Of a stretch of 64,000 nt of DNA, positions 1,386 through 59,419 are shown one piece after another. A program made the translations under genes and the position numbers. The stretch covers positions 3,472,001 through 3,536,000 of the forward strand of contig JANJGN010000052.1 of NCBI GenBank assembly GCA_026770705.1, in the 5' to 3' direction. The notes under the pieces were generated by a model that saw only the letters and a program-made list of their open reading frames with translations, ran no database searches and was not told the origin of the DNA. Positions within the stretch are counted from its first letter, which is position 1; every line of letters starts with the position of its first letter. The DNA comes from Isurus oxyrinchus (Eukaryota).

Positions 1386-1763
1386 CAGAAACCTGAAGCT
1401 GGGTTACAGGGTAATAGTTATGGCTCGGACCATTGCCAAATTTTATCGTGAAAAAATAAGGTCCTGCATCTTCCCGTCTGATGTTGTTTATAATCAGGGA
1501 ACAGTCGCCATCTTTCAGGTCTCCAGACAGCCGGGTCCGATGGTGGAACTGTGATAACTCGCGACTGTGATCCTTGGAGTGAAAGGCTATAGACCATTTA
1601 GACCATTTGTTCTGTATGTATCTTCTCATTTTCCAGATTCCGACCTTTGGTTTCTTTACCAAATCTGATGGATAACTGTAATGACATGGAATCTGTACAC
1701 ACGAACCTTCCTGCGCTGTCACCTCTCGTGGAGTGTCACCTTTCCACTCTTGTGACAATCCAA
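1386..1763 (-). CDS. Unit A V-set exon, Siglec-like, essential Arg replaced by Thr (YFFTIK)
   Basis: TCTCTCCCCAG acceptor and G|GTAAGT donor; 378 nt, phase 1-1, open. EGSCVQIPC, GDCSLII and EDAGPYFF give the Siglec V-set Cys pattern (B and E strand Cys, no F-strand Cys). Confidence 0.88.
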
Positions 1764-2385
1764 CTGGGGAGAGAAATATCAATATTTAACTCTGGATGTT
1801 TTGTTGATCCACTAGACTCGATATCCACCCCCTCCATCACTCGGGCACAGTGGCTGCAGTGTGGACCATCTACAGGACACACAATGAACTCCACAAGGTA
1901 TCACACCAGATGGAAGAGAATCCTGGACACAAAAGCGGAAAAGTTCATTCTACATTGGTTCATGGTCCTCAGGACCCTGTTTGTGCAGAAGTCTGCTCTC
2001 CAACAGAACTGAAGTTGGGGACAATGCATTTGGAATTCCACTGTCCGGGGCATTGGGTTAACTTGCTGATTTTGTTTTAAATCTAACATCTATTTTTGGT
2101 CTGTTGCCTTAAAGGGACTGTAACTGGGAGTCAGGTTAATTAGGAATTTTAGGAGTTATGATAGCAGTCTTGTAGTTATGTATGTGCTTGAAATCCTTTA
2201 TTTTGATGACAAATATGTTAATTTATTGTTTTAAATCTCTGAAGGTATTGGTGGAGTTAGTGCTTCTGAATTAAGTGCACACATCTCATAATAAATACAA
2301 ATTGCAAAATCATTATGATAGTGTGACCAGGTTTCTCTCATGGACTTGGTCTGCCTGGCACACATCACCTGCCAAGTGATAACAC

Positions 2386-3678
2386 TGTTGTAATATGCCT
2401 TTCAGGGATAGCAGCATGACATCACTCGAGAGGAAGTGTGTCATGTGATTTTTAGGAGTTGGGCTTGGCTTAAGTAAGTTCGATGTGTATTTGTGTGCGT
2501 TAGGCATAATGTCTATCTTTAAGTTCAAGTTTAGTTTGTATTTCTGTATTTGGGTGTTGAGAAAAGGGGGAACTTGAGTTAAAAAGAAGCCAGCATTCCA
2601 TTGAGGTTTTATGACTGTTGAAGGGAAGTCAAAACAAATACAAGGCATAAGAAACTGTGCTGTTGCCTAGTAACAGTGATCCAGAGGGAAGGACCCACAG
2701 AGACCGAGAAAAACAGAAAAGTACTTTCAGTTCTGTTGAAAGGAGTTGCCAGGAGAAGCAGCAAAGGAGCGGGACAGATAGTCAGTCCCAAAGTAAAGAA
2801 GAAGCCAAAACTGTCGAGTTTGACAGGAGAAAGGGCCCAAGAAAACATTCTAGTCAAATCTGGAAAAGGCCCTGTAAAATGAAGTTAAGAGTGAGGAGCA
2901 GAAGAAGGCTTCAAGCATAAAGGGAGAAAGCAGCAGGACACAGGCCTAAAGCAAAATAGGCTTGTGAGAAGCCAGAAGATCCTAGGAGACACCACAGGTT
3001 GGTGACTCATTACTACGGCCATGTGAAGCCATGGTGTTCCATTGACGTGGCTGAGCATTGGAGAGACAGGGCGTGGAAGGAAGGCTGAATGCACGTGGCG
3101 ATCCAGGGGGCAGGAACATGGGAAGGAGAGTTTGAAATAGTGAAAGTGGACCCGTGTGGAAGGTGTCTGAGTGAAAGTGTCATGTTGGAGAAGATTCCAA
3201 AGTCAGTTATGGAGAGTGGAGATTGGAAACTCTCATATGAAAGAAGCTTTTCAGTGAGACTGGTTGGCTCACAGTGTAACAAGCGTCTGGGGACAGATGA
3301 GACATAGAATTTGTTTCAAGTGGGCTCTGCCACTTGCTTTCAGAATGTTGTGTCCCTGACCACAGGTCGTCTATTGGTTTACACGGACTGTGTACTTAGT
3401 GTGAACATGAGAATATAAGATAGTTATCGTAATTTGTGTTCTACTTATGTATCTGTAAAGGTATAGGTCTGGGTGAAGGAGTAATGTCATATAGTTTGTC
3501 TTTCCTAGTTTAATAAATATTTTATTCTTTTGTTAGACGTTCATCAGATGACTCCTGTGACACTGTTCAGTAGCCGCACTCCACATTCCTAAATAAAAAA
3601 TAAAAGTTAGGACCTATCAAGCTGAGCTACACCCTGGGATCTGACTTGCCCAGTAGTAACATCAGCTGGGATGGTAAC
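2386..3678. mobile_element. Probable solo LTR (also copied at ~41410-42703)
   Basis: TG...GTAACA termini with an internal AATAAA; a related fragment lies at 21120-21650. No convincing TSD. Confidence 0.5.
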
Positions 3679-3889
3679 ACCATCCAGTCCAAGTTTCACT
3701 TTGGCCTGTGAGCAGAACACAGCTCACACAGTTTGGCTGCAGGTGTCTCCCAGCTTTCTATCCTTGTATATCTGTTCTCATGTCCCTGTTCTAAATATCT
3801 GAACCCACAATGTATTTACCCAATGCCGTATCAGTGACTGGTGCCTTTATATCATTATAAAAACATAACATGGTGATCAGTGGTGGCCA

Positions 3890-5655
3890 AACATTCTGGC
3901 AGCAAGATTCAGTACAGGTATGACGTGGTGAACAGCCTGAGATCGAGCTACATGACATGAGACGACCCTCGACGCTTTGGTCAGACCACAACAGAGACAC
4001 AGCATCAGAGAGGGTTGAAATCGCAGTGTACTGACTGCTCAGGAATCCTTTGAAGACACAGTGACGGGAAAGAGCTCAAGTAAAGAGCTGGGGAGCAGAC
4101 GCATCCCTCGTGGTGAGATTACAGCACACGGCCTGTAGGTCAGTGAGTGGGACAGTGTGTATCGCCAGGACCAGCAGCGGGTTAGCTCAGTCAGGGAAAG
4201 CGAGTGACCAGGGTGTGGGCTGGATCGATAGTGAGCGAGGGAGAGTCAAACACACAAAAACCATTGTAAAAATCAGCCCAGAGAAGTTAGTGATTATAAC
4301 GGGCGGCTTCGAGATTGCTGAACAGCAAATTGAATAAAAAACAAAGACTCCATTACTCCGTGGTGTGTTCCTGCCACAACCCGTCTTCGTGGGCGGAGCT
4401 TCGGAAAAGCACATGAAAGGGGCTAAAGCGACACTCATCCCAGGTCCTGTAGGAGAAGGAAGGTCAAAGGAATATTGTCAGAATGTCCACGAAATTCCCC
4501 AGTTTGAACTGGGATGTAGCTGACCGACTATCTGAATTCAGAATGTTTAAACAGCGTACAGAGCTCTGGTTTCCTGATTCAGGTGTGACTGAACCAGACG
4601 AGCAAGCCATAAAAATTCACCTCGCGATTGGGAATGAAGGTCTACACAGGCTGAGCACATCAGGATTAACAGCAGAAGAGCGAAAAGATCCCCAATAGAT
4701 ACGGACGATATTGGAAGACAGGTTCAGAATCAGGTGAAACTCCATATTCATCAACTAGAGTTTATGTCATTTCATCAGCCTACACAATCCATAGACCACT
4801 TCATCAGCCGATGTAGAGAAAAGGGTACGCACTGTGATTTCAAACACACAGCCTGCAGACAGAGTTGTTGAGTTGGTGATTACATCCACTCCCATGGAAG
4901 CCTTCCAGAAAGATCTGCTAGATAAGACCAAAACCTACAGCATTGAAGAGCTACTCAAGGATGGACATAAATACGAAGTGATCCTCGCAGGTCAACGAAG
5001 CTTACAGGTCCTCAGTACAACATCAATTGTTGACACACTCACTAGAACATACAAACCTAGTGAGACGTGTGGAAGGTGTGGCCTTCTGCAGGCACCAAGG
5101 AAATGCCCAGCTTTCCACCAATCCTGCAAGGCTTGTGGCAGAAAGGGCCATTGACAGCGGCAGGGCACGAGAGCAAAGGCTGATGCAGCTACAAAGAGCC
5201 GTGCGCTGATCCAATCAAACCCTGCACAACGGGGAACCTTCAAGCAATAAGAATGACCATCCGCTATCCCATCAGGAACATATACATGTGGTGACTGACA
5301 AACCAGGAAATGGCGATGATGTACACGACGAGACTAGGAGCGGTGATCGATATTCCACCTCTCACACATATCCTGACGTGGCTTGCCAATAAATTGTGGA
5401 TTGTGGTCTTTATTGCTCTCTCTGGGCACATCAAATTAACTGAAAATGTTCCCATAGGGGTGGGATTTTCTGGCCCCACCCACTTCCATGATTGTCCGGT
5501 CCGGCCGAAAGCCAATGGATTTATGTCTGTCCCAGTCTCAGAAACTATCCCATCAGCTCAGTTCATGACATAACATTGAAATATGCAGACAGATTCAACA
5601 ATATTGGCAGGTTCAAGGGAGCGGCAACATTACACCTGCAGGAGAATGCAAGTCT
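3890..5655 (+). mobile_element. Gypsy LTR-retrotransposon remnant (PBS-like TGGCAGCAAG, broken gag, internal deletions)
   Basis: gag N-terminus MSTKFPSLNWD...FRMFKQR; Zn-knuckle-like CGRCG...CPAFHQSCKACGRKGH; stops and frameshifts. Confidence 0.8.
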
Positions 5656-7046
5656 TAAAGACTCCTTGCATTAAAATTAATACAATCCAACTTTGCCACG
5701 CTATCTTGAGCCTTAAATGGCCAATAATTTCTATGCCTTCCAGTTTCATTTGCTCTCTCTTCTAATTTTGGCCATGCATCTCTCTCTGTTGAACCTCCTC
5801 TCAGGATCCGATCCCCTGCCATATTAGTTTAAAGCCTCCTCAGTTGCATCAAGGGTGTAATGTCAATTGAAACCAGGGACAACATCGAAGAATGACAATC
5901 CCACAGATCAATGTGAGCAATTAAAGAAACCTCCAGACAATTTTGCCACCACAAGATCTCGATATAACAGCAGATTACCTCTACGCTTTAGAGACTCAAA
6001 TATTCAACAGATCTATACACTTATATAATTGTCAAGAAATATGAAAATGATACCAGGAACCTCTTGTTCCCTGTCCTTCTCAAAGATCCATCCCTGCAGC
6101 AGGAGCCTGAAGAGTTACTGATGTGGGGCTTAATTTATCAGATTGTAGAATGATCCGGAAATGAAGGATGCCATTTGGCCCATCGAGCCTGTGCTGGGCC
6201 TTTGAAAGATCTGTCCAATTAGTCCCACTCTAACCTCTGCTCTCTCCTCCACAGCCCTGCAAAATGTCCTCTTCAAGTATTTATCCAGTTCCCCTTCTGA
6301 AAGTTCCTGTTGAATCTGCTTCCACCGGCCTTTCAGGCAGTGAGTCAATGGTCTCTCTCTGAGCTGCAAAGTGCTAATGTTCTGAGAACTTTAAACTCTG
6401 CAGCAGATCAGAGACAATCATGATAACTCAGAATATTTGACAGTTTTACACACAGACAGCTTTACCTTCCTTCTCTCTTTCAGTTATCTTGCTCCCTTAT
6501 TGAAGTATCTAGCAAGGTGAGAATGGACAGGAAGTGTGACACTGAACAGCCTGTCTATTCTAGGAGCTGCTGTGCTGTCTTCATGGGAAATTCTGACAAA
6601 ATCAGCAAAAGAGACAAAATTTCAGGGCCTTGTTATCCGAGTCCCAGCATCAGGATAGACCTCATCCCCCAGTTGGTATTCCTGATTCTCTATTCAGCTG
6701 ATCGCTCCCCTGTCACTGGCTGAACTACACTGGCTCCCAGTCCAGCAATGACTCAAATTTCAAATTCTCATCATAGATTTCTTACCCCACCATCCCCCCT
6801 CTACACTCTCTATCTGTGTAACCTCCTCCAACCCTAAAACCCTCTGAGATCTCTGCTCTCCTCCAATTCTACTGTCAGACAGGGAGTCAGTGTATATCAG
6901 TGAGCACAGGGGTGATGGGTGAATGGGACTTGGTGTGAGTTTGTACACTGGCTCACTGCTGAATCGGTTCCCAATCACACTCAATAAGAATGATCTTTTA
7001 CAAAGACTATTAGCCATAAACCTGTCCGAGCTGACGACGTTATTAT

Positions 7047-7086
7047 CTTGGAGAAGTGACAGGAGGAAGTAGGATTTCCCGATCAT
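7047..7086 (-). pseudogene. Unit A leader coding exon (MIGKSYFLLSLLQ) with donor GT changed to AT
   Basis: CAAG|ATAATAA here versus CAAG|GTAATA in units B, D and E. Exon acceptor at 7129-7130. Confidence 0.8.
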
Positions 7087-7536
7087 TGTCCACTCCCAGA
7101 TATTTCATAAGCTTCTGACTCTCAAACTCTGAAAGAGAAAGGAGTTAATGAGACTTCACCTCTTGTCCGACAGCTCTCAAGAGATCAGAACTGTTTTTGG
7201 ACAATGTCTTGACAGACTAATTTGATTCTCTGTGGGATGATAGGTGCTCTGCAGAGAGTTACAAGGCTTGAAGAATGAAAAACATTAAAGGATTTGCATT
7301 TCTGTAGCACCTTTCACCACCTCAAGACGTCCCAAAGCTCATGTCTCTGCACTTCCCTCATCCCTTGAGCTAGAAAGATGTTCTGTACAACAGACTTGAG
7401 TCTCACACCCAGATCTCAATAACCAGTAGAAATCTTTCAAAGGCATCAATCATTGGAATCTGTCTTAAAAAAGTCACAACATCAACAAAGGGCGGTGTTG
7501 GTGGTGGAAGTGAATTCCAATCGTTCCGTTACTTAC

Positions 7537-7620
7537 CCAGGACCTGTCCGACTGCTCGCCTGGGGAGGAACTGCCCACACGCTCTGCTTGGGCTGAATGA
7601 CCTCTTCCTGTGCTGCTCCC
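7537..7620 (-). other. Unit A putative non-coding first exon
   Basis: Conserved in 5 copies, each ending CTGG|GTAAGT ~400 bp upstream of the leader exon; 5' boundary approximate. Confidence 0.6.
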
Positions 7621-7663
7621 TCTGTGTGTTTAATTAGAAAGGGTGAATGTGTCACTGTGAGAC

Positions 7664-7677
7664 AAAATGAGGAAGTG
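7664..7677. promoter_or_regulatory. PU.1/Spi-type Ets site AAAATGAGGAAGTG, unit A promoter
   Basis: Matches the A-rich GAGGAAGT consensus; same position relative to exon 1 in units B, D and E. Confidence 0.6.
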
Positions 7678-7899
7678 GGTAACCAGTGAGAAGATCGAGG
7701 ATGTTTTGTGCTCTCAGCAAAACGTTTACCATGTGATGATCTGTCAGCTCATATTTGGGCAGCTGTAGTCATGAAGCTTCTCCATTGGCTCCATGGGATT
7801 AGACTCCTCCCCCTCATCTCAGAGGCTGAAACTCAGGCGATAGAGTTCCCAATACAGGTCTCTGGCCTTATGATACATTTCAACGATCCCTGTTATCAT

Positions 7900-9665
7900 T
7901 ACGGAGGGAGTGCTGCACTGTCAGCGGGACTTTACTGTGGGAGTGCTGCACTATCAGAGGGTCAGTAATGTGGGAGTGCTGCAACATCAGAGGGTCAGTA
8001 ATGTGGGAGTGCTGCACTATCAGAGGGAAAGTAATGTGGGAGGGCTGCACTGTCACAGGGTCAGTACTGAGGGAGTGCTGCACTGTCACAGGGTCAGCAA
8101 TGTGGGAGTGCTGAACTGTCGGTGGGTCTGTACTGAGTGAGTACCGCACAGTTGGAGGGTCAGTATTGAGGGGGTGCCGGACTGTGGGAGGGTTAGTACT
8201 GAGGTAGAGTGGAGTGTGAGGAGATATCCTTTCATGGCAAATTTTAACTGGAATTTATTTAAACACAATTCTTGTACTGTGTGTTATTGCAAAAGAAAGG
8301 ATTTGAGGAACTATGTCTTGTTCCCGTAAGCCTAAAAATAATTTTCACTGATTTCAATGAGTTAGCATTGAAACCTGCCTCTTTGGGCACCAGTCTTGAT
8401 TGAAACAACTCACACAGCACAGTGGGAGAGTGAGTACTGAGGGAGTGCTGCACTGTGGGAGGGTGAGTACTGAGGGTGTGCTGCACTGTGGGAGGGTGAG
8501 TACTGAGGGAGTGCTGCACTGTGGGAGGGTGAGTACTGAGGGAGTGCTGCACTGTGGGAGGGTGAGTACTGAGGGGTTGCTGCACTGTGGGAGTGTGAGT
8601 ACTGAGGGAGTGCTGCACTGTGGGAGAGTGAGTACTGAGGGAGTGCTGCACTGTCAGAGGGTCAGTAATGAGGGAGTGCTGCACTGTCAGAGGGTCAGTA
8701 ATGTGTGAGGGCTGCACTGTCAGAGGGTCAGTAATGTGGGAGGTCTGCACTGTCAGTTGGTCAGTAATGAGGGAGTGCTGCACTATCAGAGGGTCAGTAA
8801 TGTGGGAGGGCTGCACTGTCAGAGGGTCAGTAATGTGGGAGGGCTGCACTGTCAGAGGGTCAGTAATGTGGGAGGTCTGCACTGTCAGATGGTCAGTAAT
8901 GAGGGAGTGCTGCACTGTCAGAGGGTCAGTAATGTGGGAGGGCTGCACTGTCAGAGGGTCAGTAATGTGGGAGTGCTGCACTGTCGGAGGGTCTGTACTG
9001 AGTGAGTTCCGCACAGTTGGAGGGTCAGTATTGAGGGGGTGCCGGACTGTGGGAGGGTTAGTACTGAGGTAGAGCGGAGCGTGAGGAGATATCCTTTCAT
9101 GGCAAAGTTTACCTGGAATTTATTGAAACAGAGATTCTTGTACTGTGTGTTATTGCAAAAGAAAGGATTTGAGGAACTAAGTCTTGTTCCCGTAAGCCTA
9201 AAAATAATTTTCACGGATTTCAATGATTTAGCAATGAAACCTCCCTCTTTGGGCATCAGTCTTGATTGAAACAACTCGCACAGCACTGTGGGAGGGGGAG
9301 TACAGAGGGAGGGCTGCACTGTGGGAGGGTGAGAATTGAGGGAGAGCTGCACTGTGGGAGCGTCAGTACTGAGGGAGTGCTGAACTGTCGGAAGGTCAGT
9401 AGTGAGGGAGGGATACAGTGTCAGAGGGTCAGTACTGAGGGAATGCTGCACTGTGGGTGGGTGAGTACTGAGGGAGTGCTGCACTGTCAGATTGTCAGCC
9501 ATGAGGGAGTGCTGCACTGTCAGAAGGTCAGTGCTGACCGGGTGCTGCACTTGAAAAGGGTCAATAATGAGGTAGTGCAGCACTGTCAGAGGGACAGTAA
9601 TGAGGGAGCGCTGCACTGACGGAGGGTCAGCACTGAGGAAACGCTGCACTGTCAGTTCTGAGTGT
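7900..9665. repeat. 33-bp minisatellite arrays (CAGTACTGAGGGAGTGCTGCACTGTCAGAGGGT) with two copies of a ~280-bp spacer
   Basis: Visible periodicity; unit resembles the Deu-SINE core; spacer at ~8140-8420 and ~8995-9285. Confidence 0.85.
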
Positions 9666-11494
9666 GGTCTGCACTGTTCTAAGTGCATTCTAGGCACTGC
9701 CCAAGGTTCCGCCTGATGTCTGTGTAACAACAACATCATGTACACGTCGAGAATATTTCCCACTGTTCGGTGCAGCAAGACAGCTTTGGAATGGCACCAC
9801 CACTGACAGGAGTGTGAAACTACAATGTGACATGTTTACATGGGATATTTCTATTATAAAGATGGGCACAGGAATTCGTATGATAGAGAAAATGTGACAA
9901 CATGAAGTAATGTCTTTGAGCCAAAAATTTGGCTTCAAACTAAGAATTTTAATCTATAAATATCTACAGAACAGGCTGAGCATTTTAATCACTTGTGTTA
10001 ATCAATGTAATTTTATTCATAACCCAAATGCTTCTTACAATCTATCGCAGCATGAAAAAGGTGCAGCATTCAGAAAGCACATTCCAATCGGAGAACAGAG
10101 TTTAGCAACGTCACATTTCTGTTCATTCCTATTCGACCATGTTGGCTGCACACAGCCAGACAATGCCGTGGTTATGATGTGTCCACACAGCAGGACTGGG
10201 GAGCACCAGGTATAAGGAAAAGTTTCAGCTTGCTGAGGAGAAGAAGGAGAATCTCTCGTTCCAGGTTTCTCTCCGTACATTAAGAAGCAGGCATGCCGAT
10301 GTTTCATTGCACTCTGTCTGCTGATGGGAGTCCGCTTGGAAATTGCTGTTTGTGCTGATGGAAAGAATAAGCTTTTCATAAATTGTGGGATTGAGAACAA
10401 ACACAGGGAGGATATGCTGAACATTTATAAAGCTCTGGTTAGGTCACAACTAAACTAATGCATGTGTCTGATTTTGGACATGGAACCCAATTCTGTCCTC
10501 AGGACATTGACAGATGGAGAGACCAGATACAGATCAATGCAGGAGGATTATTTATTTTCCCAATCTTTGATCCAAGCATCTCATCAAACACAGAGCGGAA
10601 CCAGGATCAAGGATGTTGGTCTCTGTAATCTGTAACACATCACACAGTCCACCCATCCACTCAGCCTTCAGGATGGATGCTAATTGTACTCTCCAAGTGT
10701 GAAAGACTAAAATTGTGGTTTATTGCAGCTGTATCTCATTCTGTTATCAAAGCTGTCTCATCCATCCATGACATATTGAAGAAGATAAACCTGCAACCAA
10801 TTTTTCACATCATAATTTCCAGTTGTTCATTGGCTATATCAATGTAAACATGTCACATTGTACTGATGAACTCCCATCATTGCTGGCACTGTAGCACATG
10901 TTATCCTCTAAGCTGCAGAGAATTTCTCAAATTTCCAATCAAATTGTTTCCCTGTTTCCCAGATTGTTGTTCGTTTCGCTGTTTAACGATGAAGTGTAAA
11001 ATCCAAATATATTTCTGAAAATACATTTGACTACAAAATGGTGAGTAAATTTTAACAATCTCCTCTGCTCCAATTATCCACCGATGCTGCATTTCCTGAA
11101 GTCTACACTGGCTGATGAATATTCTAAACACTGACAGACAGCAAGGTGAATAACAGAATGAAAATTAACTCATAATCACGGACACGGGATTGAATTTGTC
11201 CGTTCTGTCCTGGTACATCATCGAACGATATCTAAAGACATTTACAATCAGAATGGAGAGAAGGATGTTTCCAACAGTGAGGGACAATTCTGAAGGAGGA
11301 TGTTCGAATTGAAACCCACAGACAATCATCCTGGATAGATCATTCCGAAGAAATTCCATCAGATTGTAACAAGAGGTTTAAATCTATTTCCTGGGAGTGA
11401 GTTCCTGTGGATATTAGGAAGGTAAATTGGAGTTTTGAATGATTCTCCCATTCTGTATTCTCCCCACACTGTGTGTGTCTCATTCTTGCTCAGT

Positions 11495-11611: not shown

Positions 11612-11709
11612 CTGTAATAGAAACAGAAATGATCAGAGTGACAATCAGAGTGATCAGTGTTTAGTATTATTGATCCAAATCAAAAATTCCACCCACAATA
11701 GATACATTA

Positions 11710-13195
11710 ATTATTGATACTGAACAGGGTTTGATTATTGATTCTGAACGGGGTTTGATTATTGATACTGAACGGGGTGTGATTATTGATACTGAACGGG
11801 GTTTGATTATTGATACTGAACGGGGTTTGATTATTGATTCTGAAAGGGGTTTGATTATTGATTCTGAAAGGGGTTTGATTATGGATTCTGAACGGGGTTT
11901 GATTATTGATCCTGAACGGGGTTTGATTATGGATTCTGAAAGGGGTTTGATTATGGATTCTGAACGGGGTTTGATTATTGATCCTGAACGGGGTTTGATT
12001 ATGGATTCTGAAAGGGGTTTGATTATGGATTCTGAATGGGGTTTGATTATTGATTCTGAACGGGGTTTGATTATTGATTCTGAACGGGGTTTGATTATTG
12101 ATACTGAACGGGGTTTGATTATTGATTCTGAACGGCGTTTGATTATTGATACTGAACGGGGTTTGATTATTGATTCTGAACGGCGTTTGATTATTGATAC
12201 TGAACGGGGTTTGATTATTGATTCTGAACGGCGTTTGATTATTGATACTGAACGGGGTTTGATTATTGACATTGAACGGGGTTTGATTATTGATTCTAAA
12301 CGGTGTTTGATTATTGATTCTAAACGTTGTTTGATTATTGAACCTGAATGGAGTTTGATTATTGATTCTGAACTGGGGTTGAATATTGATACTGAACGGG
12401 GTTTGATTATTGATTCTAAACGGTGTTTGATTATTGAATCTGAATGGAGTTTGATTATTGATACTGAACAGTGTTTGATTATTGATTCTGAACAGTGTTT
12501 GATTATTGAACCTGAACGGAGTTTGATTATTAATTCTGAACAGTGTTTGATTATTGATTCTGAAAGGGGGTTGATTTTTGATACTGAACGGGGTTTGATT
12601 ATTAATTCTGAATGGGGTTTGATTATTGATACTGAATGATGCTTGATTATTGATTCTGAGCGGGCTTTGATTATTGATACTGAACGGGGTTTGATTATTG
12701 ATTCTGAACGGGGTTTGATTATTGATTCTGAACGGGGTTTGAGTATTGATACTGAACGGGGTTTGATTATTGATACTGAACGGAATTTGATTATTGATAC
12801 TGAATGGTGTTTGATTAATGATACTGAACGGGGTTTGATTATTGATTCTGAACGGGGTTTGATTATTGATACTGAACGGGGTTTGATTATTGATACTGAA
12901 CGGGGTTTGATTATTGATTCTGAATGGGGTTTGATTATTGATTCTGAATGGGGTTTGATTATTGATACTGAACGGGGTTTGATTATTGATTCTGAACGGG
13001 GTTTGATTATTGATACTGAACGGGGTGTGATTATTGATTATGAACGGGGTTTGATTATTGATACTGAACGGGGTTTGATTATTGATACTGAACGAGGTTT
13101 GATTATTGAAACTGAACGGGGTTTGATTATTGATACTGAACGGGGTTTGATTATTGATTCTGAACGGGGTTTGATTATTGATTCTGAACGGTGTT
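11710..13195. repeat. 24-bp minisatellite (TTGATTATTGAT[T/A]CTGAACGGGGT), ~60 copies, intronic
   Basis: Direct periodicity; explains the long repeat ORFs in the track. Confidence 0.95.
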
Positions 13196-13429: not shown

Positions 13430-13479
13430 CTGTAATAGAGATGGAAATGGACAAAGTGACAATCAACATGATGTGTATT

Positions 13480-13775: not shown

Positions 13776-13777
13776 AG

Positions 13778-16412: not shown

Positions 16413-17488
16413 CTAAATACAAATAAAGGTTTCATTGTGAGCAAACACAGTGCACAGCAAGACTCCATGATACATCTCCCTCTATTTGGTGCCTATGTGC
16501 ATTTCAAGGTTTCTGTCCTGTTTTAAGTTCCTATGTCAACTTTTATAATGGTCACTGCTGGTGTTTTTCTTTTTGTACATTCATGGGAAGTGGATGTATC
16601 TATCTAGACCAGCATTTATTACCCATCCCTAATTGCCCTTGAGGAGGTGGTGGTGAGTTTTTCACCCCCACAGAATTCCCAGCCTCTGACCGGCTCCTGT
16701 AGCCACAGTATTTATGGCCGGTCCAGTTAGTAGTTTGGTTAACACCCCCCAGGATGTTGATTGTGGGGGATTCAGTGATAGTAAACTCACTGAACATCAA
16801 GGGGAGATGGTTAGATTCTCTCTTGTTGGAGATGATCACTGCCTGGTGCTTGTGTGGTGTGAACGTTACTTGTCATTTCTCAGTCCAAGCTGAGTGTTGT
16901 TCAGCTCTTGCTGCGTGTGGATATGTAAACTGTCACGCTGTAATTACAGCCTTCCACCAGAGGAGACACTGTCGGGCTAGGAGAAAAGAAAATGTCTTTC
17001 ACATCATCAGGATGTTCACAGGGATTTGACAGTGGAGGAATTGCTTTAGAATAATGGGGTATTGAGTGATAAACCTACAATTCTCTGTGCAGGGGGCTGC
17101 TCGTCCAATACAGGGTCTTGTTCAGCTGATGTCGTCAGTGTTTCAGAGCAGAATCTGGAGCAACACTCCAGTGCAGCACAGGGAGAACAGACAACTCACA
17201 CATGTCTGTGTGTGTGTGAGCAAGCACACGTGTGATTCTGTGTATGTTTCCTTCTGTGTGTGTGCATGCAGGTGTACACACCTGTGCACATGTGGGATTG
17301 CACATGAATGCTTGTTTGTGTGCNNNNNNNNNNNNNNNNNNNNNNNNNNNNNNNNNNNNNNNNNNNNNNNNNNNNNNNNNNNNNNNNNNNNNNNNNNNNN
17401 NNNNNNNNNNNNNNNNNNNNNNNNNNNNNNNNNNNNNNNNNNNNNNNNNNNNNNNNNNNNNNNNNNNNNNNNNNNNNNNNTAACTCAC

Positions 17489-40410: not shown

Positions 40411-40788
40411 CAGAAACGTGAAGCTGGGTTACAGGGGAAACGTTATGGCTCCGACGATTGCCACATTTTATCGTGAAAAAATAATGTCCTGCATCTTCCC
40501 GTCTGATGTTGTTTATAATCAGGGAACAGTCGCCATCTTTCAGGTCTCCAGACAGCCGGGTCCGATGGTCGAACTGTGATAACTCGTGACTGTGACCCTT
40601 GGAGTGAAAGGCTATAGACCATTTAGACCATTTGTTCCGTATGTACCTTCTCATTTTCCAGATTCCGACATGTGGTTTCTTTACCAAATGTGATGGATAA
40701 CTGTAATGACATGGAATCAGTACACACGAACCTTTCTGCGCTGTCACCTCTCGTGGAGTGTCACCTTTCCACTCTTGTGACAATCCAA
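40411..40788 (-). CDS. Unit C first V-set exon, Arg replaced by Thr (YFFTIK)
   Basis: 378 nt, phase 1-1, open; paralog of 1386-1763. Confidence 0.88.
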
Positions 40789-49548: not shown

Positions 49549-50406
49549 CTAACAGACAGAGAATGGGTCTTTTTAGAGAAATATAACGTGAAGCATCAGT
49601 TCAAATAGAAATCACAGTCCCACAAGAGAAAGCACTTTTACAAGGATGATATCAGAACTGAGAGGTTACAATGATCAGGAAAGATTTTCTTGCTCTTTGG
49701 CAGTAGTGTTTCTGTCTCTCAGCTTAATACACGTTCACTCCGAGACATGTGAATTGAGAACACTGGATGAGAGAAGAGGCTCAGACCAGAGATTGGAGTT
49801 AAAAGCAGAATACTGCGGATGCTGGAAATCTGAAACAAAAACAAAAATTGCTGGAAAGACTCAGCAGGTCTGACAGTATCAGTGGAGAGGAAGACAGGGT
49901 TAACGTTTTGAGTCCGTATGACTCTTCATCAGACCAGAGGTTTGAGTTCACTGGCTTCTCATTTCCTCAGTGATCTGGGTGAGTTATCACCTTGTGGTTT
50001 GTTGGATCTTGCTGTGCACAAACTGACTGCTGTGTTTTACATCTGTGACTACAATTCAGGAATAATTTCATTGGCTGTGAAGGGATTTGGATCCTCCTGA
50101 GGTGGTAAATTGCGCTGCAGAAATGCACATCTTTCTTTTATCGATACGTCAGACTTTTAAACAGGACAGGAGAGATTGATGGGAGTGGTAACCTGATAAT
50201 ACAGTTAATGCTTTTCATCATTGATATTAAAGTGAGTATTAGAGGTTGCTTTAGGACTGAACTGGAAGCTATCACCAGGTTATTGAGAATCAGACAGTGT
50301 GTTATAATAAGCTGCGTTTTGTGTTAATATGTAAACGTCACATTTTGTGTTATCTCCCATTGAGTGTTGAATGTGAATTGTTGAGTAATTATAACACAGC
50401 ACTTAC

Positions 50407-50781
50407 CACAAACGTGAAGCTGGGTTACAGGATAATAGTTGTATCTATTCCAGCTGTCAAATTCTATTCTGAAAAAATAAGGTCCTGCATCTTCCCGTCT
50501 GATGTTGTTTATAATCAGGGAACAGTCGCCATCTTTCAGGTCTCCAGACAGCCTGGTCCGATGGTGGAATCTTTGATCCCTGTGACTGTGACCCTCGGAA
50601 TGAAAGGCTATAGACCATTTCGGCTGTGGGTTCCCATCTATTCCTTTCAAGCAGATTCAGACACGTGATCTCCCTACGAAATTTGATAAGTAACTGTAAT
50701 GACATGGAATCTGTACACACGAACCATCCTGCGCTGTCACCTCTCGTGAAGTGTCGCCTTTTCAATCTTGTGACAGTCCAA
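50407..50781 (-). pseudogene. Unit D V-set exon with two nonsense codons, Arg retained
   Basis: TGA at 50762-50764 (W) and 50657-50659 (G); C-strand Trp changed to Cys; YFFRIE present. Confidence 0.85.
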
Positions 50782-51484
50782 CTATGGAGAGAAATGTCAA
50801 TATTTAACTCTGGATAGTTTGTAGATCCACTAGACTCGATATCCACCCTCTCCATCAGTGGGGCACAGTGGCTGCAGTGTGGACCATCTACAGGACACAC
50901 AAAGAACCCCCCAAGGTATCACAACGGAGGGAAGAGAATCCTGGACACAGGAGTGGACAAGTTCATTCTACATTGGCTCATGGTCCTCAGGACCCTGTTT
51001 AGTGAAGCCAGTCTTCCACCCAACACAGTGTCTACAAGACACACAGGGAAACTGTGTAAACATCTCATCTCTCTACACTGACTGGTTTGAGCTTCAGTTT
51101 AACTTTCAGTATTTTTAAATTTCCATATTGTGGTTGCTATGGTGAAACTGTGCAGGAAGTGCGAGGGCTGGACTCTCTGTCTATTCTGACTGCAGCTGTG
51201 ATGTGGTCGTGGTGATTCTCAGTAAAATGAAACCCTCTGAGCTCCTCCATCCTCGAGGTTTAGGGAGTGAATTCCAGAGCTCAGGCCCCAGGCAGCTGAA
51301 GGCCCGGCCGCCACTATTGGAGTGATGGGAATCGGGGGATGGTCAAGAGGCCGGAATTGGAGTAACACAGAGATCTGGGAAGTTGTTTGGGTGAGTTGCA
51401 GGAGGTTACAGAGATAAAGAGATAAGAATGATCTTTTACAAAGACTGTTAAACATAAATCTGTCCGAGCTGATGATGATATTAC

Positions 51485-51520
51485 CTTGGAGAAGTGACAG
51501 GAGTAAGATTTCCTGACCAT
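51485..51520 (-). pseudogene. Unit D leader exon with 4-nt deletion
   Basis: 36 nt versus 40 nt in B and E, giving a frameshift at the splice. Confidence 0.8.
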
Positions 51521-51970
51521 CGTCCACTCCCAGATATTCCATCCACTTCTCACTCTCAAGCTGTGAAAGAGAAAGGAGTTAATGAGACCTCACCTCTTGT
51601 CCGACAGCTCTCGAGAGATCAGAACTGCTTTTAGACAATGTCTTCACTGACTAATTTGATTCTCTGTGGGATGATAGGTGCTCTGCAGAGAGTTACAAGT
51701 CTTTAAGTAAGACAAACAATGATTGATTTGCATTTCTATAGCACCTTTCACTATCTCAGGGCATCCCAAATCTCATGTCTCTGCAGTTCTCTCATCCCTT
51801 GAGCTAGAAAGATGTTCTGTACAACAGACTTGAGCCTCACACCCTGATCTCAATAATCAGTAGAAATCTTTCAAAGGCATCAATCATTGGAATCTGTCCT
51901 TATAAAGTCACAACATCAACAAAGGACAGTGTTGGTGGTGGAAGTGAATTCCAATCGTTCCGTTACTTAC

Positions 51971-52111
51971 CCAGGACCTGTCCGACTGCTCGCCTGGGGA
52001 GGAACTGCCCACACGCTCTGCTTGGGCTGAATGACCTCTTCCTGTGCTGCTCCCTATTTGTGTTTAATTAAAAAGGGTGCATGTGTCACTGTGAGTCAAA
52101 ATGAGGAAGTG
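51971..52111 (-). promoter_or_regulatory. Unit D non-coding exon 1 and composite AP-1/PU.1 site
   Basis: TGAGTCA at 52092-52098 abutting AAAATGAGGAAGTG at 52098-52111. Confidence 0.62.
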
Positions 52112-52214
52112 CTTGGTACCAAGTGAGAAAGCAACTCTTTGCCTCGCACTGTTAGAAAACTGTTAACCCTTTGCGTGCCAATAATGTGGTTGACGGGCCA
52201 TCGACTGTTCATAT

Positions 52215-53320
52215 GCAACAAGCTCGAGGGTTTGAATGGGCCTCCTCCTGTTCCTGTGTGACAGGCTCGAGGGGTCTAAATGGGCCTCCTCCTGTTCCTG
52301 TGTAACAGGCTCAAGAGGCTGAATGGATCTCCTTGTTTTCCTGTGTTACAGGTTAGATGGTCTGAATGGGCCGCCTCCTGTTCCTGTGTAACAGGTTCAA
52401 GAGGACAGAATGGGCCTCCTCCTGTTCCTGTGTAACAGCATCATGGGGCTGAATGGGCCTCCACCTGTTCCTATCTAACAGGCTTGAGTGGCTGAATGTG
52501 CCTCCTCCTGTTCCTGTGTAACAGGCTTGATGGGGCTAAATGGAGCCCCTAATGTTCCTGTGTAACAAGCTTGTGGAGGCTGAATGGGTCTCCTGTACCT
52601 GTGTAACAGGCTCAAGGGGACAGAATGGGCCTCCTCCTTTTCCTGTGTAACAGGCTCGAGGGAACAGAATGGGCCTCCTCCTTTTCCTGTGTAACAGGCA
52701 CGAGGGACTGAATGGGTTTCCTATTCCTGTGTAAGTGGGATGAGAGACTGAATGTCCTCTTCCTTTTCCTGGGTAACAGGCTCGAGGAGCTGAGACTCTC
52801 TCCTGTTCCTGTGGAAGGGTGTTGAGGGACTGAATGTCCTTTTCCTGTTCCTGTATAATAGGCTCAAGAGGCTGATGGGCTTTCTCCTGTCCTCATGTAA
52901 CAGGCTTGAGTGGCTGAATGGTCCTCCTCCTGTTCCTGTGTAACAGGCTTGAGGGAATGAATGGGCCTCCTCCTATTCCTGTGTAACAAGTTCGAGGGGG
53001 CTGAATGGGCCTCCTCCTGTTCCTGTGTAACAGGCTCGAGGGAATGAATGGGCCTCCTTCTGTTCCTGTGTAACAGGTTCGAGGGGGCTGAATGGCCTCC
53101 TGCTGTTCCTGTGTAACAGGATCAAGAGGCTGAATGGGCCTCTTCCTGTTCCTGTGTAACAGGCTCGAGGGGGCTGAATGGGCCTCCTCCTGTTCCTGTG
53201 TAACAGGCTCGAGGGGCTGAATGTGCCTCCTCCTGTTCCTGTGTAACAGGCTTGAGGGGGCTGAATGGCCTCCTGCTGTTCCTGTGTAACAGGATCAAGA
53301 GGCTGAATGTCCTCCTGTCA
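52215..53320. repeat. ~43-bp minisatellite built from the CR1 LINE 3' tail (GTAACAGGCTCGAGGGGCTGAATGGGCCTCCTCCTGTTCCTGT), ~25 copies
   Basis: Unit matches LINE tails at 33715-33760 and 37610-37650. Confidence 0.85.
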
Positions 53321-54652
53321 TTAAAAATAAATACTGCAGATGCTGTAAATCTGAAATAAAAACAGAAAATGCTGCATTAACTCAGCAGGTCTGGTAGCAG
53401 CTGTGGAGAGAGAAACAGACTTCTTGCTTATAGACTCTGAACAAGGGTCATAAGGACACAAAATGCTAATTCTGTTTATCTCTGCACAGATGCTGCCAGA
53501 CCAACTCAGTTTCTCCAGCATTTTCTGTTTTTGTATCAGGTGCCCTCTTGTTCTTGTGTAGCAGGTTCGAGGGGGCTGAATGGCCTCCTCCTGTTCCTAT
53601 TCAATGGGCAGTCAAAGAATGTCTGATTTTGGACCTCGAACCCAATTCTGTCCTCAGGACATTGACAGAAGGAGAGACCAGTTACAGGTTAATGCCGGAG
53701 GATTATTTATTTTCCCAATCTTTTATCCAAGTATCTCATCAAACACAGAGCAGAACCAGGATCAAGGATGTTGGTCTCTGTGATCTGTAACACATCGCAC
53801 AGTCCACCCATCCACTCAGCCTTCAGGATGGATGCTCATTGTACTCTCCAAGTGTGAAAGACTAAAATTGAGGTTTATTGCAGCTATATCTCATTCTGTT
53901 GTCAAAGCTGTCTCATCCATCCATGACATATTGAAGAAGGTAAACCTGCAACCAATTTTTCACATCATAATTTCCTATGTTCATTGGCAACATCAATGTA
54001 AACATGTCACGCTGAAATGATGTCCTCCCACCAGTGGTGGCACTGTATCACATCTGTTATCCTCTGAGCTGCAGAGAATTTCTCAAATCTCCAATCAAAT
54101 TGTTTCCCTGTTTCCGGGATTGCTGATGGTTTTGCTCTTTAACGATGAAGTGTAAAATCCAAATATATATCTGAAAATACATTTGACTACAAAATGCTGA
54201 GTAAATTTTACCAATCTCCTCTGCTCCAATTATCCACCGATCCTGCATTCCCTGAAGTCTACACTGGCTGATGAATATTCTGTAAACACTGACAGACAGG
54301 AAGGTGAATAACAGAATGAAAATTAACTCATAATCACGGACACGGGATTGAATTTGTCCATTCTGTCCTGGTACATCATCGAACGATATCTAAAGACATT
54401 TACAATCAGAATGGAGAGAAGGATGTTTCCAACAGTGAGGGACAAATCTGAAGGAGGATGTTCAAATTGAAACCCACAGACAATCATCCTTGATAGATCA
54501 TTCCGAAGAAATTCCATCAGATTGTAACAAGAGGTTTAAATCTATTTCCTGGGAGTGAGTTCCTGTGGATATTAGGAAGGTAAATTGGAGTTTTGAATGA
54601 TTCTCCCGTTCTGTATTCTCCCCACACTGTGTGTGTCTCATTCTTGCTCAGT

Positions 54653-54769
54653 TTATAAATTCCCATAAACAGAATTCTTGGCAAAATCACAGTTTGCGTA
54701 AAGATCATCATCTGTATCAGGATTGACTCCGCGGTTAGATTTCATTTCCAGATCCTTCTCATCTTTCTT
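54653..54769 (-). pseudogene. Orphan terminal cytoplasmic exon ...DDDLYANCDFAKNSVYGNL*
   Basis: Open 117-nt paralog of 11495-11611 with acceptor intact; no upstream exons, Gypsy remnant begins at ~54879. Confidence 0.68.
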
Positions 54770-54878
54770 CTGTAATAGAAACAGAAATGATCAGAGTGAC
54801 AATCAGAGTGATCAGTGTTTAGTATTATTGATCCTAATCGAAAATTCCACCCACAATACATACATTAAATATTGATAC

Positions 54879-57800
54879 TGTTGGATGCTGCTCACGAGTT
54901 TGTTGGGACTTATGGATCCAGGCTTGTTTTGGAGAGGCTGAGTAGGTACAATAGACAGAGTAGATCAGCAGACAGTTCTTAGATGAAACACATTCTGCTT
55001 ATTTACAAAGGAACTCAGCAGCTACACTTGTGTGCTTTCAACTCAAGCCCTGTCTCCGCATTACAGACTCTAACCAAAGGTGACCGACTACTGAGGTACC
55101 TGCGCCACTCGGCTGTTGGACACTGATATAAGAGTTAAACAGGGACTTCTATTAGTGAAAACCCAAGGTCAGCAGAATTCTCCAGGTGAACCTTGTGCAC
55201 CATGGGGCTGACATCAGCAGAACTCTCCAGAAAGGCCTTGAAGATCACGAGGGATTAACTCGAGAAGAGACATAAAGAGATGCTGAGGGTAAAGAGATAA
55301 GGTAAAGGCAAACAGCACCAGGCTAGAACGAGATAAACAGTTCTTGCTTGGGTAAGGAGCAGATATGTACCTGGGACTGGGAACATCTGCTTATTATGTG
55401 ATTATGTACTGACAAGATTTGAATTTAAATAACCCAATGTGTACGTGACTAACTCTGTGAACAAAAAAGATGGTTTCCCTGTAATGGGTAGAGTTCTGTT
55501 TTTAGCCAGGCCTGAGGTTGATTCTGAGAACACACCACAACACTGAGCTCATGTTATCTTCCATTGTAACCTTCTTCTTAAAGGTACATCACACATCAGA
55601 TTACCACCACCCTCCCCCTTTACTCAGAAATACATTTTACACTTACTTTTACCATTTTCTCAAAGTATCAGATGATTTACACAGATCAGTAATTTACAAA
55701 TTCAGTCTTTCTGGGGGGTTTCCTTATGCGTCTGGAACGTCTCAGATCCACAGCTTCAGATGCTTTGTCAGGAGTCTCCTTTTCTGATGTTGTCCCAACA
55801 CCAGCTTCTTCGGTGGACACCTGCAAACCTGTTTCCTCAACTCTTGCAGGTACAACGGACCCTTCAGACACATCTGTTCTCAGCTGAGTTCTTTCAACAG
55901 GAGACATAGACGCAGCCGTGAAGACTGGTGGGGTTGTTTCTTGGTACTTTGTTTCTCTCCTCCTTATATGACCCACATGTCTCCATATGACTCGGTCTTC
56001 CACTTTCACATGGTGAGAAAGAGTTCCAATCGCTGCATTTATTTCACCCGGTGACCACATTGGCCCCTCTCTAAAATCCTTCACATATACCGTCTCTCCT
56101 ACGGTCAGCTTCCTGTCATGACTATGCCAGTCATGTCCAGTTTCCTGTCTTCCTGGACTCCTTTCCACCTTCCCGCTGACATTTAGCATGACTGATGTTG
56201 CAAATGTGACGTGAGAAAAAACTTTTTCACACAACTAAGTTCTGGGCCTGGAATGCACGGCCTGGAAGTGTTGTGGAGGCAGGTTCAATCGAGGCATTCA
56301 GGAGGGCATTAGATGGTTATTTGGATAGAGAAAAGGTGCAGGGGCATGGGGAAAGGCAGGGCAATGACACTAGGTCATGATGCTCATTTGGAGAGCTGGG
56401 ACAGACACGATGGGCTGAATGGCCTCCTGCTGTGCCATTAAGACACTGTGATCCTGCAGAGGAGACTCTGAAAGGCAAACCGATTTATTGATACAACCCT
56501 TTGTGTGTATTAATTGTGACAAACTTCTGGGAGGCCTTCTCGAACTCCAATTGTTGATAAGCATGGCTCATATCAGCTCCGTGTAAGCCGTTCCAGTCAA
56601 TTCTTGTCATCTCCACAAACACTTTGGCCAGGCTCAGGTACAGGGACTATTGGTGCTGCCCATTCTGAGGACAGCACAGATTGTATCCCTCCCAGTTTCT
56701 AGAACCTGCCCAATTCAGCATCTGCCTTTTCCCACATTGCATAAGGTACTGGCCGTGCCTTCATAAATCAGAGGGGTAGAGTCTGGATCCACATGAATTT
56801 TTGCTTGCAGCCCCTGGATCTCCCCGAGTTCATCTTGGAAAACTGAGATGTATTTTTGTAGTAGCTCAGGTAGCCCACTGGCTCTCAGTTGGAAGATCTC
56901 AGACCAATCCAGTTTAATATCTTTCAGCCAGTTTCGTCCAAGGAGGCTTGGTCCCTCACCAGCTCCCATCATCAAGGGTCATTTTACTGATTGACTTCCA
57001 TACTGTATAACAACCCTGCTTATGTCTTTGGCTTGAATGTCTTCTCCCGTGTGAGTTTTCAATTAGTCATCTGTTTCTTCCAAATTTAATTGACTTTCCC
57101 CATGATTCCAGTATTTGAAAGTATGCTCCCCAATTAGCGTAATGTTAGCTCCTGTGTCCACCCCCATTCTGAGAGCTCTATCATTCACCCTCACTGTTAC
57201 ATAGATTGGCTCTGTTCTTCCTACCTTTAAATTATACAATGAATAACTATCTGAATCTGTTACTTCAGGCTCTTCTATGTTATGGATCTCACAGGGTTTT
57301 CTCTCTTGGTTGAAACTCTGCCTGATTCTATCCTTGCAATCTCTCATGGGCTCTCTGTTTCGATGACAGTAAAAACAATTGATTTTTTTAAAGTTCCATT
57401 CACTACGAGGTTGTCTGCTTCACCTCTGTTCACATTATTCCATGTTTTCTCTGCTAAGTCATTCCTTTTTATTTGCTGCTAGTGGTGGAGGTTTCCCGTT
57501 TCTCATCAGAGCTGTACATTTTCCCGCACTTCTTGGCTGAGGCTCCTCACCCAACATGAGGACGGTGACATTTTGCACTATCCATATGTTTTTCGAGTCC
57601 CTCACTGCTCTTTCCATAGCCAGCACTATTCCCAGCACCTTCTGAATATCCAAATCTGTTTCAGACAGTAATCTCTTCTGAATCGCATCTTCATTTATAC
57701 TGCACACCAGTTGATCTCTCAGCATATTATTTATAGATTTACCAAACTCACAATGTCCTATTAACTCTTTCAGACTTTCCACATAACATGCAGCTGCCTC

Positions 57801-58260
57801 CCCTGGGACTCTATTTCTTGAGTTAAATTTGGACCGTTGCATCGTTACCGAGGGCTGGGGCTGGGAAGGAATCTTCACAAGGTTCACTATATCATCTAAA
57901 CTTTTTGAATCCATGGCACCGGGTGACATTAAAGTTCGCATCAATCCCTAAATCTTACTCCCACACGTGGATAAGAGGGTCGCTCGCCTCTTCTCCTCCC
58001 CATCAATGTCATTCACTTGGAAAAAGAACGCGAGGAGTTCACCATAATGAGACCAATCGCCCACCGTTGGGTCGAAAGGATCAACTCTTCCAAACTGCAG
58101 CATTCTTCGAGGGGACTGCTTCGGTTATTAGGATGGAAATTATATTTATAATCGTTGCGTGAGGCACAGCCGGATTTCGGTTCCCTTGCTCTCATTCCTT
58201 GCTTTTTCTTCCTTGTTATTCACCTCATCGCCAGTTTATTCAACCCTTGTCACTACTTTA
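54879..58260 (-). mobile_element. Second-family Gypsy remnant: PBS, gag, protease, RT start, integrase C-terminus, PPT, 3' LTR
   Basis: PBS-like TGGCGATGAGG at 58223-58233; HCEFG...MLRDQLVC; VDTGA; GPSLLGRNWL; VGETVYVKDF...WRHVGHIRRR; purine tract at ~55610-55625. Confidence 0.85.
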
Positions 58261-58264
58261 GTTT

Positions 58265-58570
58265 GCACTCCCTCGGTACTGAGCCTGCGACAGTGCAGCA
58301 TTCCCTGGGTACGGACCCTCCGACTGTGCAGTGGTCCCTTAGTCATGAGCCCCTGATAGTGCAGCAGCCCCTAAGTACTGATGCTCGAAAAGTGTAGCGC
58401 TCCCTCAGCATTGACCATCTGACAGTGCAGCACTCCTTCAGCACTGGCACACCCAGAGTGCAACACTCGCAGTACAGACCCTCCGACAGTGCAGCACTAA
58501 GTCAGTGCTGACCGTCCAACAGTGCAGCACTCCCTCAGCACTGACCCTCCGACTGTGCAGGACTCTCAGT
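58265..58570. repeat. Degenerate 33-bp minisatellite
   Basis: CAGTGCAGCACTCCCTCAG units. Confidence 0.7.
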
Positions 58571-58789
58571 CCTGACACCGAGTGCCGGTCTGAATTTTGC
58601 CAAATGAATTTCGAACTGACGACCTTCTCACTCAGAGAGAGAGAGGGTTCGAAATCCAGTGACACACAGGAGAAATTCCTGGTCAATGACTTTCCACTTT
58701 TGAGCAGAAATATCATCACAAGTCCAGAACGTCAAGGGTTAACAGCTTCAAAAAACTCAAAACACGAGCTGTTCTGTCACTTTGATCCA

Positions 58790-58929
58790 ACTTCCTCATT
58801 TTGTCTCACAGAGACACATCAACCCTTTCTCATTAAATACACAGAGGGAGCAGCACAGGAAGAGGTCATTCAGCCCAGGCAGAGCGTGTGGGCAGTTCCT
58901 CCCCAGGCGAGCAGTCGGACAGGTCCTGG
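58790..58929 (+). promoter_or_regulatory. Unit E (inverted) PU.1 site and non-coding exon 1
   Basis: ACTTCCTCATTTT at 58790-58802; CTGG|GTAAGT donor after 58929. Confidence 0.62.
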
Positions 58930-59379
58930 GTAAGTAATGGAACGATTGGAATTCACTTCCACGACCAACACAGTCCTTTGTTGATGTTGTGACTTTATAA
59001 AGACAAATTCCAATGATTGATGCCTTTGAAAGATTTCTACTGATTATTGAGATCTGGGTGTGAGGCTCAAGTCTGTTGTACAGAACATCTTTCTAGCTCA
59101 AGGGATGAGGGAAGAGCAGAGACATGAGCTTTGGGACATCCTGAGGTGCTGAAATACGATATAGAAATGCAAGTCCTTCATTGATTTATTTTTTTAAAGC
59201 TTTTTAACTCTCTGCAGAGCACCTATCATCCCACAGAGAACCAAATTAGTCTGTGTAGACAATGTGTAAAAGCAGTTCTGATCTCTCGAGAGCTGTCGGA
59301 CAAGAGGTGAGGTCTCATTAACTCCTTTCTCTTTCACAGTTTGAGAGTCAGAAGCTAAAGGAATATCTGGGAGTGGACA

Positions 59380-59419
59380 ATGATCGGGAAATCCTACTTC
59401 CTCCTGTCACTTCTCCAAG
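59380..59419 (+). CDS. Unit E leader exon, intact (MIGKSYFLLSLLQ)
   Basis: TTTCACAG acceptor (exon starts 59340), ACAATG start, CAAG|GTAATA donor; V exon predicted beyond the right edge. Confidence 0.82.

Follow-up and report, generated by a model that had tools for sequence, protein, structure and literature searches.

We have found that a 64-kb stretch of DNA from Isurus oxyrinchus (GenBank assembly GCA_026770705.1, contig JANJGN010000052.1, positions 3,472,001 to 3,536,000 of the forward strand; the window in what follows, with positions counted from its first letter) carries a cluster of genes for receptors of the Siglec type. The window is in all likelihood a piece of a large, elasmobranch-specific expansion of Siglec-type genes arranged head to tail on the minus strand, and holds one intact gene (unit B), one damaged gene with two V domains (units X and C), one pseudogene (unit D) and several fragments. 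Ectodomain exons that are highly similar between the units (DNA identity 95–97% for C2 and 83–91% for V exons) stand before three different endings: a neutral transmembrane (TM) segment with a tail resembling the immunoreceptor tyrosine-based inhibitory motif (ITIM) in unit C, a TM segment with an intramembrane Arg and a short tail in unit D, and a tail with Y-x-N tyrosines in unit B.

The Siglec-like exons lie on the minus strand, with a single exception. There are five V-set exons (1763–1386, 20307–19942, 36775–36410, 40788–40411 and 50781–50407), each in phase 1-1, with a length that is a multiple of 3, an AG acceptor and a G/GTAAGT donor. The same rule holds for three C2 exons of 297 nt (18911–18615, 35681–35385 and 49548–49252) and two Ig exons of 282 nt (17770–17489 and 16412–16131). 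These exons and their phase 1 boundaries had been proposed in an earlier note on this DNA and are borne out by splice sites, lengths and phases, and the motifs it named could all be located.

That note had also taken the receptors to be Siglecs, with which our searches, run on single exons one by one, agree. For the V exon at 20.3 kb, 17 of the 17 best phmmer matches in the PDB are Siglecs (among them Siglec-5, sialoadhesin, Siglec-10, -7 and -8, CD33 and MAG), with an E value of 5e-17 for Siglec-5; the scores of Siglec-5, sialoadhesin and MAG are close together and those of CD22 and Siglec-15 much weaker. The Pfam V-set family lies above its cut-off for the V exon and the Siglec-specific family Ig_CD22 reaches 40 bits against a cut-off of 27. 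Judged by these scores, the match of the V exon to Siglecs is well beyond chance. An AlphaFold model of the V domain built on 20 sequences has a predicted local distance difference test score of 87.6, and when it was used in Foldseek the matches shown at ranks 1–47 were all Siglec structures, with template-modelling scores of 0.78–0.87. Domain 2 of CD33, MAG, Siglec-8 and Siglec-10 can be aligned with the whole of the C2 exon. Siglecs have a characteristic cysteine pattern, with a B–E intrasheet pair, no Cys in the F strand and an extra Cys towards the C2 domain. SCVQIPC and NCSLII of the V exon align with LCVLVPC and NCSLSI of Siglec-5, and the residues of the pattern, which are predicted to form disulfides, are invariant or nearly so in 20 sequences. 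The canonical F-strand Arg is present in the V exons at 20.3, 36.8 and 50.8 kb, where YFFRIE aligns with YFFRVE of Siglec-5, and absent from those at 1.8 and 40.8 kb, which read YFFTIK. The assignment of the receptors to the Siglec family holds, and binding of sialoglycans is predicted. They may belong to the CD33-related subgroup; the V-domain tree contained no reference set for the conserved Siglecs.

Homologues were sought with one V exon among 1.84 billion representative proteins, and the elasmobranch RefSeq models returned, which are computer predictions with borrowed mammalian names, were mapped back on the window. Beyond sharks and rays, the closest proteins bear the names Siglec-6 (bony-tongue fishes) and Siglec-12 (monkey). 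In the V-domain tree, the elasmobranch V domains form one clade (support 91/86) apart from the tetrapod and bony-fish Siglec-like clades, which indicates that the expansion is lineage-specific and fits the independent expansion in cartilaginous fish that had been suggested.

Unit B (23.9–11.5 kb) is a complete gene, and the only clearly intact one in the window as assembled. It has nine exons, all of whose splice sites are canonical and all of whose phases fit. The leader exon (23888–23849; MIGKSYFLLSLLQ plus 1 nt), identified through homologous proteins, has an intact GT donor and is followed by the V-set exon with the canonical Arg (YFFR; 20307–19942, phase 1-1), the C2-set exon (18911–18615) and the two Ig exons, exon 3 (17770–17489) and exon 4 (16412–16131). 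A neutral TM exon (14878–14782), a paralogue of that of unit C, ends in phase 2, and three cytoplasmic exons complete the gene: the first (14025–13941) encodes GSSTGRGHSAQAERVGSSSPGEQSDRYW, the second (13429–13325, phase 0-0) carries YENC and is 94% identical to the white shark model P0155, and the final exon (11611–11495) encodes DDDLYANCDFAEDSVYGNL with YANC and YGNL before the stop. P0155, named ‘MAG-like isoform X4’, joins Ig–Ig–TM to the same three cytoplasmic exons at 92–97% identity to unit B. The earlier note had listed the YENC, YANC and YGNL exons, at 11.5–13.4 and 54.7 kb, as a separate module. YENC is present at the first place and YANC/YGNL at both, but the exons of the first place form the last part of unit B, a gene with a TM segment of its own. 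The copy at 54.7 kb (54769–54653) is an orphan of the final exon within a 95%-identical duplicated block, with no gene in front of it.

The two Ig exons of unit B, which are 96.5% identical, lie on either side of the assembly gap 17324–17480, which begins 8 nt past the donor of exon 3. Either the pair is a real tandem like that of white shark P0155, or the assembler duplicated one exon. About 62 copies of a 24-bp satellite (11710–13195) fill the intron that separates the YENC exon from the final one. We considered whether the YENC open frame is itself repeat and rejected this, as the repeat-matching part is intronic, beyond the exon donor, and leaves the exon unaffected.

The unit B tail ends Y-x-N-C, seven residues, Y-x-N-L and stop, and in unit B and 10 relatives the arrangement is Yxx(C/W), seven residues, YxN(L/I/V). 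Across species (white shark, basking shark, bamboo shark, the devil ray Mobula and the stingray Hypanus) the tail follows the consensus I-Y-A/E-N-C, seven residues, I/V-Y-G/A-N-I/L, stop. Its last two tyrosines stand 11 residues from one another, a spacing found in the ITAM (immunoreceptor tyrosine-based activation motif; YxxL/I, 6–8 residues, YxxL/I). The spacing of that consensus therefore fits, but the first motif has Cys or Trp at +3 and not Leu or Ile, so that the tail contains no consensus ITAM. No ITIM-consensus motif is conserved across the homologues of this tail. Tyrosines of the YxN type are a further likeness to CD22 and Siglec-10, whose tails carry a Grb2-type YxN site.

The second gene has two V domains. 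Its inner V exon (36775–36410, with YFFR) starts AEPSQEWK, as do the inner V domains of two- and three-V relatives, while V domains directly after a leader start VGLSQEWK; its place in the tree is among the inner V domains of sharks, basking shark included (97/89). At 40.8 kb (unit X, 40788–40411, YFFT) and 1.8 kb the V exons are Arg-less, and both group with the outer V of the basking shark two-V protein (97/88). The Arg-less exons appear to be outer V domains of two-V genes rather than separate units. Downstream of the inner V are the C2-set exon of unit C (35681–35385), 164 nt upstream of the gap block 34011–35221, the neutral TM exon (32820–32724), a cytoplasmic exon (31616–31536) and the final exon (30186–29938), which encodes LLYANP and TEYAQIRFKRN before the stop. 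The white shark models P0018 and P0151 and the basking shark model P0003 match unit C. The neutral TM segment and the LLYANP/TEYAQI tail had both been noted earlier and are present. The distal TEYAQI fits an ITIM-like motif, in a tail whose frame is lost in the assembly; LLYANP, with Pro at +3 where relatives have Ile or Val, fails the ITIM consensus.

This gene is damaged in two respects. No leader for the V exon at 40.8 kb was found between 40.8 and 46.9 kb, and a relaxed DNA search gave only the four known leader copies. Set against white shark P0018, the cytoplasmic exon is one T short between 31589 and 31588. With the canonical TM donor the frame then reaches a TGA at 31567–31565, 29 nt before the last splice junction, and the ITIM exon is unread. 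Since the stop is so close to that junction, the frameshifted form may escape nonsense-mediated decay and give a receptor without motifs.

RNA evidence bears directly on this part of the gene. Public runs were mapped on 29900–34010, of which X15 and X18 are RNA-type and X2 is DNA. In X15 the depth peaks exactly on the three 3′ exons of unit C and is low in the introns; both boundaries of the TM exon are ends of an RNA-type contig. One X15 contig and a 266-nt X18 contig join 31536 to 30186, and the unjoined contig ends at 32723 and 31535 carry, in each case, the first letters of the exon that follows. X2, the DNA run, covers the whole of 29900–34010 and has no such joints. The last three exons of unit C are thus spliced, in this copy or in a paralogue at least 95% alike. 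The check by RNA mapping which the earlier note had called for succeeds for these exons. The reads also reveal two forms: the extra base at 31588 is carried by the X2 DNA (4181 of 4241), by the spliced contig of X18 and by about one-fifth of the X15 depth, and the remaining X15 depth agrees with the window. Deleted and in-frame forms both exist in public data, as alleles, paralogues or through an assembly error. The frameshifted form, which most of the X15 depth carries, ends 17 residues after the TM segment. One X15 contig joins the cytoplasmic donor 31536 to 30585, perhaps because of an alternative 3′ exon or because paralogues differ.

Unit D is a pseudogene, of which only the C2 exon (49548–49252) and the TM exon remain intact. 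The leader (51542–51485) has a 4-nt deletion and reads from an upstream ATG as MEYLGVDDGQEILLLSLLQ. The V pseudo-exon (50781–50407) has TGA codons at 50764–50762 and 50659–50657, and only a remnant is left of the Ig exon (48928–48776), whose 5′ 129 nt and acceptor are replaced by unrelated sequence. The TM exon (47103–46964), which is supported by its splice sites and by homologues, encodes the intramembrane Arg noted earlier, a 12-residue tail without Tyr and a stop. Of unit A, the window contains a leader (7086–7047) with the donor AT instead of GT (7046–7045) and an outer-type Arg-less V exon (YFFT, 1763–1386); the rest of the gene lies off the window. This V exon and that at 40788–40411 differ by 17 non-synonymous changes and 1 synonymous change in 375 nt, with flanks 96% identical. 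The amino-acid change in the pair exceeds the expectation of neutral drift at about p = 0.04 (simple binomial).

The ectodomain halves of the units are alike beyond their exons, the introns being 80–89% identical. A likeness that takes in introns and exons alike suggests that the 5′ halves underwent segmental duplication or gene conversion. At the 3′ ends, the TM exons of units B and C are 74% identical in DNA and the Arg-TM of unit D is unrelated to them. Each of the three tail modules is joined to the same ectodomain type in RefSeq models of other elasmobranchs, which supports the proposal of similar ectodomains with more than one tail type. The ITIM-type tail is present in sharks and rays. 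The Arg-TM with its short tail ends RefSeq proteins of cloudy catshark (Scyliorhinus) and bamboo shark (Chiloscyllium) at 78–82% identity; a homologue search with the Arg-TM region itself gave two proteins, and the module was traced in the proteins already collected from the V search. The tail modules predate the split of sharks and rays. The ectodomain halves have been kept alike by segmental duplication and probably by gene conversion, whilst the 3′ halves are three much older signalling modules. Rather than recent exon shuffling, the pattern suits a process in which 5′ halves were duplicated or converted onto old 3′ ones, and the statement that the cluster was assembled by exon swapping was too strong. 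One further protein of the same V clade, P0013 of sawfish, a ray (‘MAG-like’), carries at the end of its own chain a consensus ITAM (YQEL, seven residues, YSEL). It represents a fourth tail type of the family, which is not in the window.

Could the receptors belong to some other Ig-superfamily family, such as pIgR/CD300-like, nectin-like or PILR-like proteins, and merely resemble Siglecs? There are partial V matches to pIgR, nectin-4 is the top match of the C2 exon and PILR appears at rank 48 of the fold search. We find this hardly credible, however, given a full-length V alignment in which the cysteine pattern and the YFFR motif match Siglec-5, the Siglecs that take all the top fold matches, the names of the nearest non-elasmobranch relatives, and TEYAQIRF, which resembles CEYSEIK of primate Siglec-12. 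A different question is whether the window encodes three working receptors, one with an ITIM tail, one with the Arg-TM and an adaptor and one with a YxN tail, and so a functional paired-receptor system. All three modules are present with good splice sites, all three are kept in other species on the same ectodomain type, and the ectodomain exons are 83–97% identical between units. The activating and inhibitory family that the earlier note described stands as far as near-identical ectodomains on different ends are concerned, but here the activating unit is a pseudogene, its V exon interrupted by two nonsense codons, its Ig exon cut short and its leader altered, and the inhibitory unit, for which there is no leader nearby, has a frameshift and a proximal LLYANP that is not a consensus ITIM. 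That the three work together in this window is accordingly quite improbable.

The lesions might instead be artefacts of a poor, gap-rich assembly or features of one haplotype, all the genes being intact in the living animal. There are six gaps in 64 kb, one of them flanked by the near-identical Ig exons, and the base missing at 31588 is present in a DNA run and in a spliced RNA-type contig. The defects of unit D are, however, of different kinds (two substitutions, a 129-nt replacement and a 4-nt deletion), which a single artefact is unlikely to produce, and most of the X15 depth at 31588 lacks the extra base, so that the deleted form exists outside this assembly. We therefore regard intact genes throughout as unlikely, and retain the reading of the window as part of an expanded cluster with one intact, one damaged and one dead gene. 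Several points weigh against it. Further exons could sit inside the gaps, and in so gappy an assembly some lesions, the 1-nt deletion above all, could be errors, alleles or paralogue differences. The reads, at 95–99% identity, cannot be assigned to this copy over a paralogue. The mapped region, 29900–34010, is the 3′ part of unit C; units A, B and D and the V-to-V splice are models built from sequence. Finally, our literature search found no binding or signalling data for shark Siglec-like proteins.

We infer the ligand, the adaptor and the direction of signalling as follows. In unit B, sialoglycans would bind and cluster the Arg-bearing V lectin domain, upon which kinases would phosphorylate the tail tyrosines. 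The phosphotyrosines would recruit a Grb2-type SH2 protein (pY-x-N) or, alternatively, given the ITAM-like spacing, a tandem-SH2 kinase. In its in-frame form, unit C would dampen signalling through TEYAQI and perhaps LLYANP; its deleted form would be a receptor with a 17-residue tail and no motif. Relatives with the Arg-TM elsewhere in the genome would need an adaptor with an acidic TM segment; no sequence for a shark adaptor of the DAP12 or FcR-gamma type is found in the window. More tentatively, and with more doubt than confidence, we suggest that the unit B tail is a third Siglec signalling module in cis, kept from rays to lamniform sharks, which would link the sensing of sialic acid directly, with no adaptor chain, to SH2 proteins of the Grb2 or Syk type. 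The Siglecs of elasmobranchs might then form a three-way system (inhibit, activate via an adaptor, signal directly) that predates the mammalian pairs and is independent of them.

The closest known parallel is provided by the mammalian paired Siglecs (Siglec-5/14 and Siglec-11/16), in which near-identical lectin ectodomains are followed either by a tail with tyrosine motifs or by a basic TM segment and a very short tail. The window is like them in having near-identical ectodomains before a tyrosine-motif tail or a TM segment with a basic residue and a short tail, and the likeness of the ectodomains reaches into the introns, as duplication or gene conversion predicts. Unlike them, it has a pseudogene for its activating partner, a damaged gene for its inhibitory one and a third tail class; adaptor use is predicted. 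Since the shark V domains form their own clade, the pairing arose separately from that of the mammalian paired Siglecs. The unit C gene also resembles Siglec-12 (Siglec-XII; monkey P0052), with two tandem V-set domains before C2 and a tail that may be of the ITIM plus ITIM-like type, which runs ...IQYAFLSF...CEYSEIK in the monkey and ...LLYANP...TEYAQIRF in unit C. Human Siglec-12 has lost the Arg that contacts sialic acid. In the shark outer V a Thr has taken the place of the Arg, in a copy specific to the lineage; the outer V of basking shark (P0003) retains the Arg, unlike the outer V exons of the window, and the two-V layout arose within the elasmobranch clade. The RefSeq models of other elasmobranchs (white shark CD33-like XP_041037177 to XP_041037180 and P0155; basking shark Siglec-12 P0003 and P0154; cloudy catshark Siglec-12 P0006) have the same exon modules in the same order without the lesions carried by the window's copies, and in white shark the tail and TM exons are 89–97% identical to those of the window. 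In white shark relatives C2 joins TM directly, whereas in unit C the gap 34011–35221 lies within the C2-to-TM intron. A membrane-proximal domain of some relatives (...GITCVC...NPPG...) was not found in the readable sequence of the window. Our literature search gave no paper on shark or ray Siglecs, and one review contained nothing on fishes.

The leader exons deserve separate mention. A search by hydrophobicity for ATG-to-GT exons with a hydrophobic core upstream of each V exon gave nothing credible, and the leader was recognised only when homologous proteins were mapped. There are four copies, 0.7 to 5.3 kb upstream of V exons: the intact one of unit B, that of unit A with its dead donor, the altered one of unit D and an intact one on the opposite strand (59380–59419, plus), which probably belongs to a neighbouring plus-strand gene. 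About 450 bp upstream of each leader lies a copy of unit B cytoplasmic exon 1 (SSTGRGHSAQ...; spans 7617–7047, 24399–23849 and 52051–51485 on the minus and 58837–59419 on the plus strand). The copy at 24.4 kb contains a stop, and a partial white shark model, P0156, reads from this exon into the leader region. The relic may be a 5′ untranslated exon or the trace of read-through between tandem genes.

The window has many repeats and satellites besides its six gaps, and no gap interrupts a recognised exon; a further gap (29576–29767) is 3′ of the unit C stop codon. A 33-bp satellite family occurs at 7.9–9.7, 17.9–18.5, 30.3–30.5, 43.8–45.5 and 58.3–58.6 kb. Reverse-transcriptase fragments (RVT_1; 0.2–1.2 and 39.2–40.2 kb, minus strand) lie directly downstream of both Arg-less V exons, and a retroelement fragment with an aspartic-protease motif, whose Pfam match is under the cut-off, lies at 55.7–57.9 kb (minus strand).

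The common view of Siglecs is of a small conserved set together with a CD33-related group that evolves fast and has been studied in mammals. For annotation, the present results mean that the RefSeq names CD33-like, Siglec-12 and MAG-like do not reflect orthology in elasmobranchs. They also make birth-and-death turnover visible directly, with an intact, a damaged and a dead gene side by side. Sharks and rays built a large Siglec family of their own, in which the inhibit/activate logic recurs alongside lectin arrays with many heads and one more conserved tail type; it is a second, independent case in which to ask why sialic-acid sensors evolve as paired receptors.

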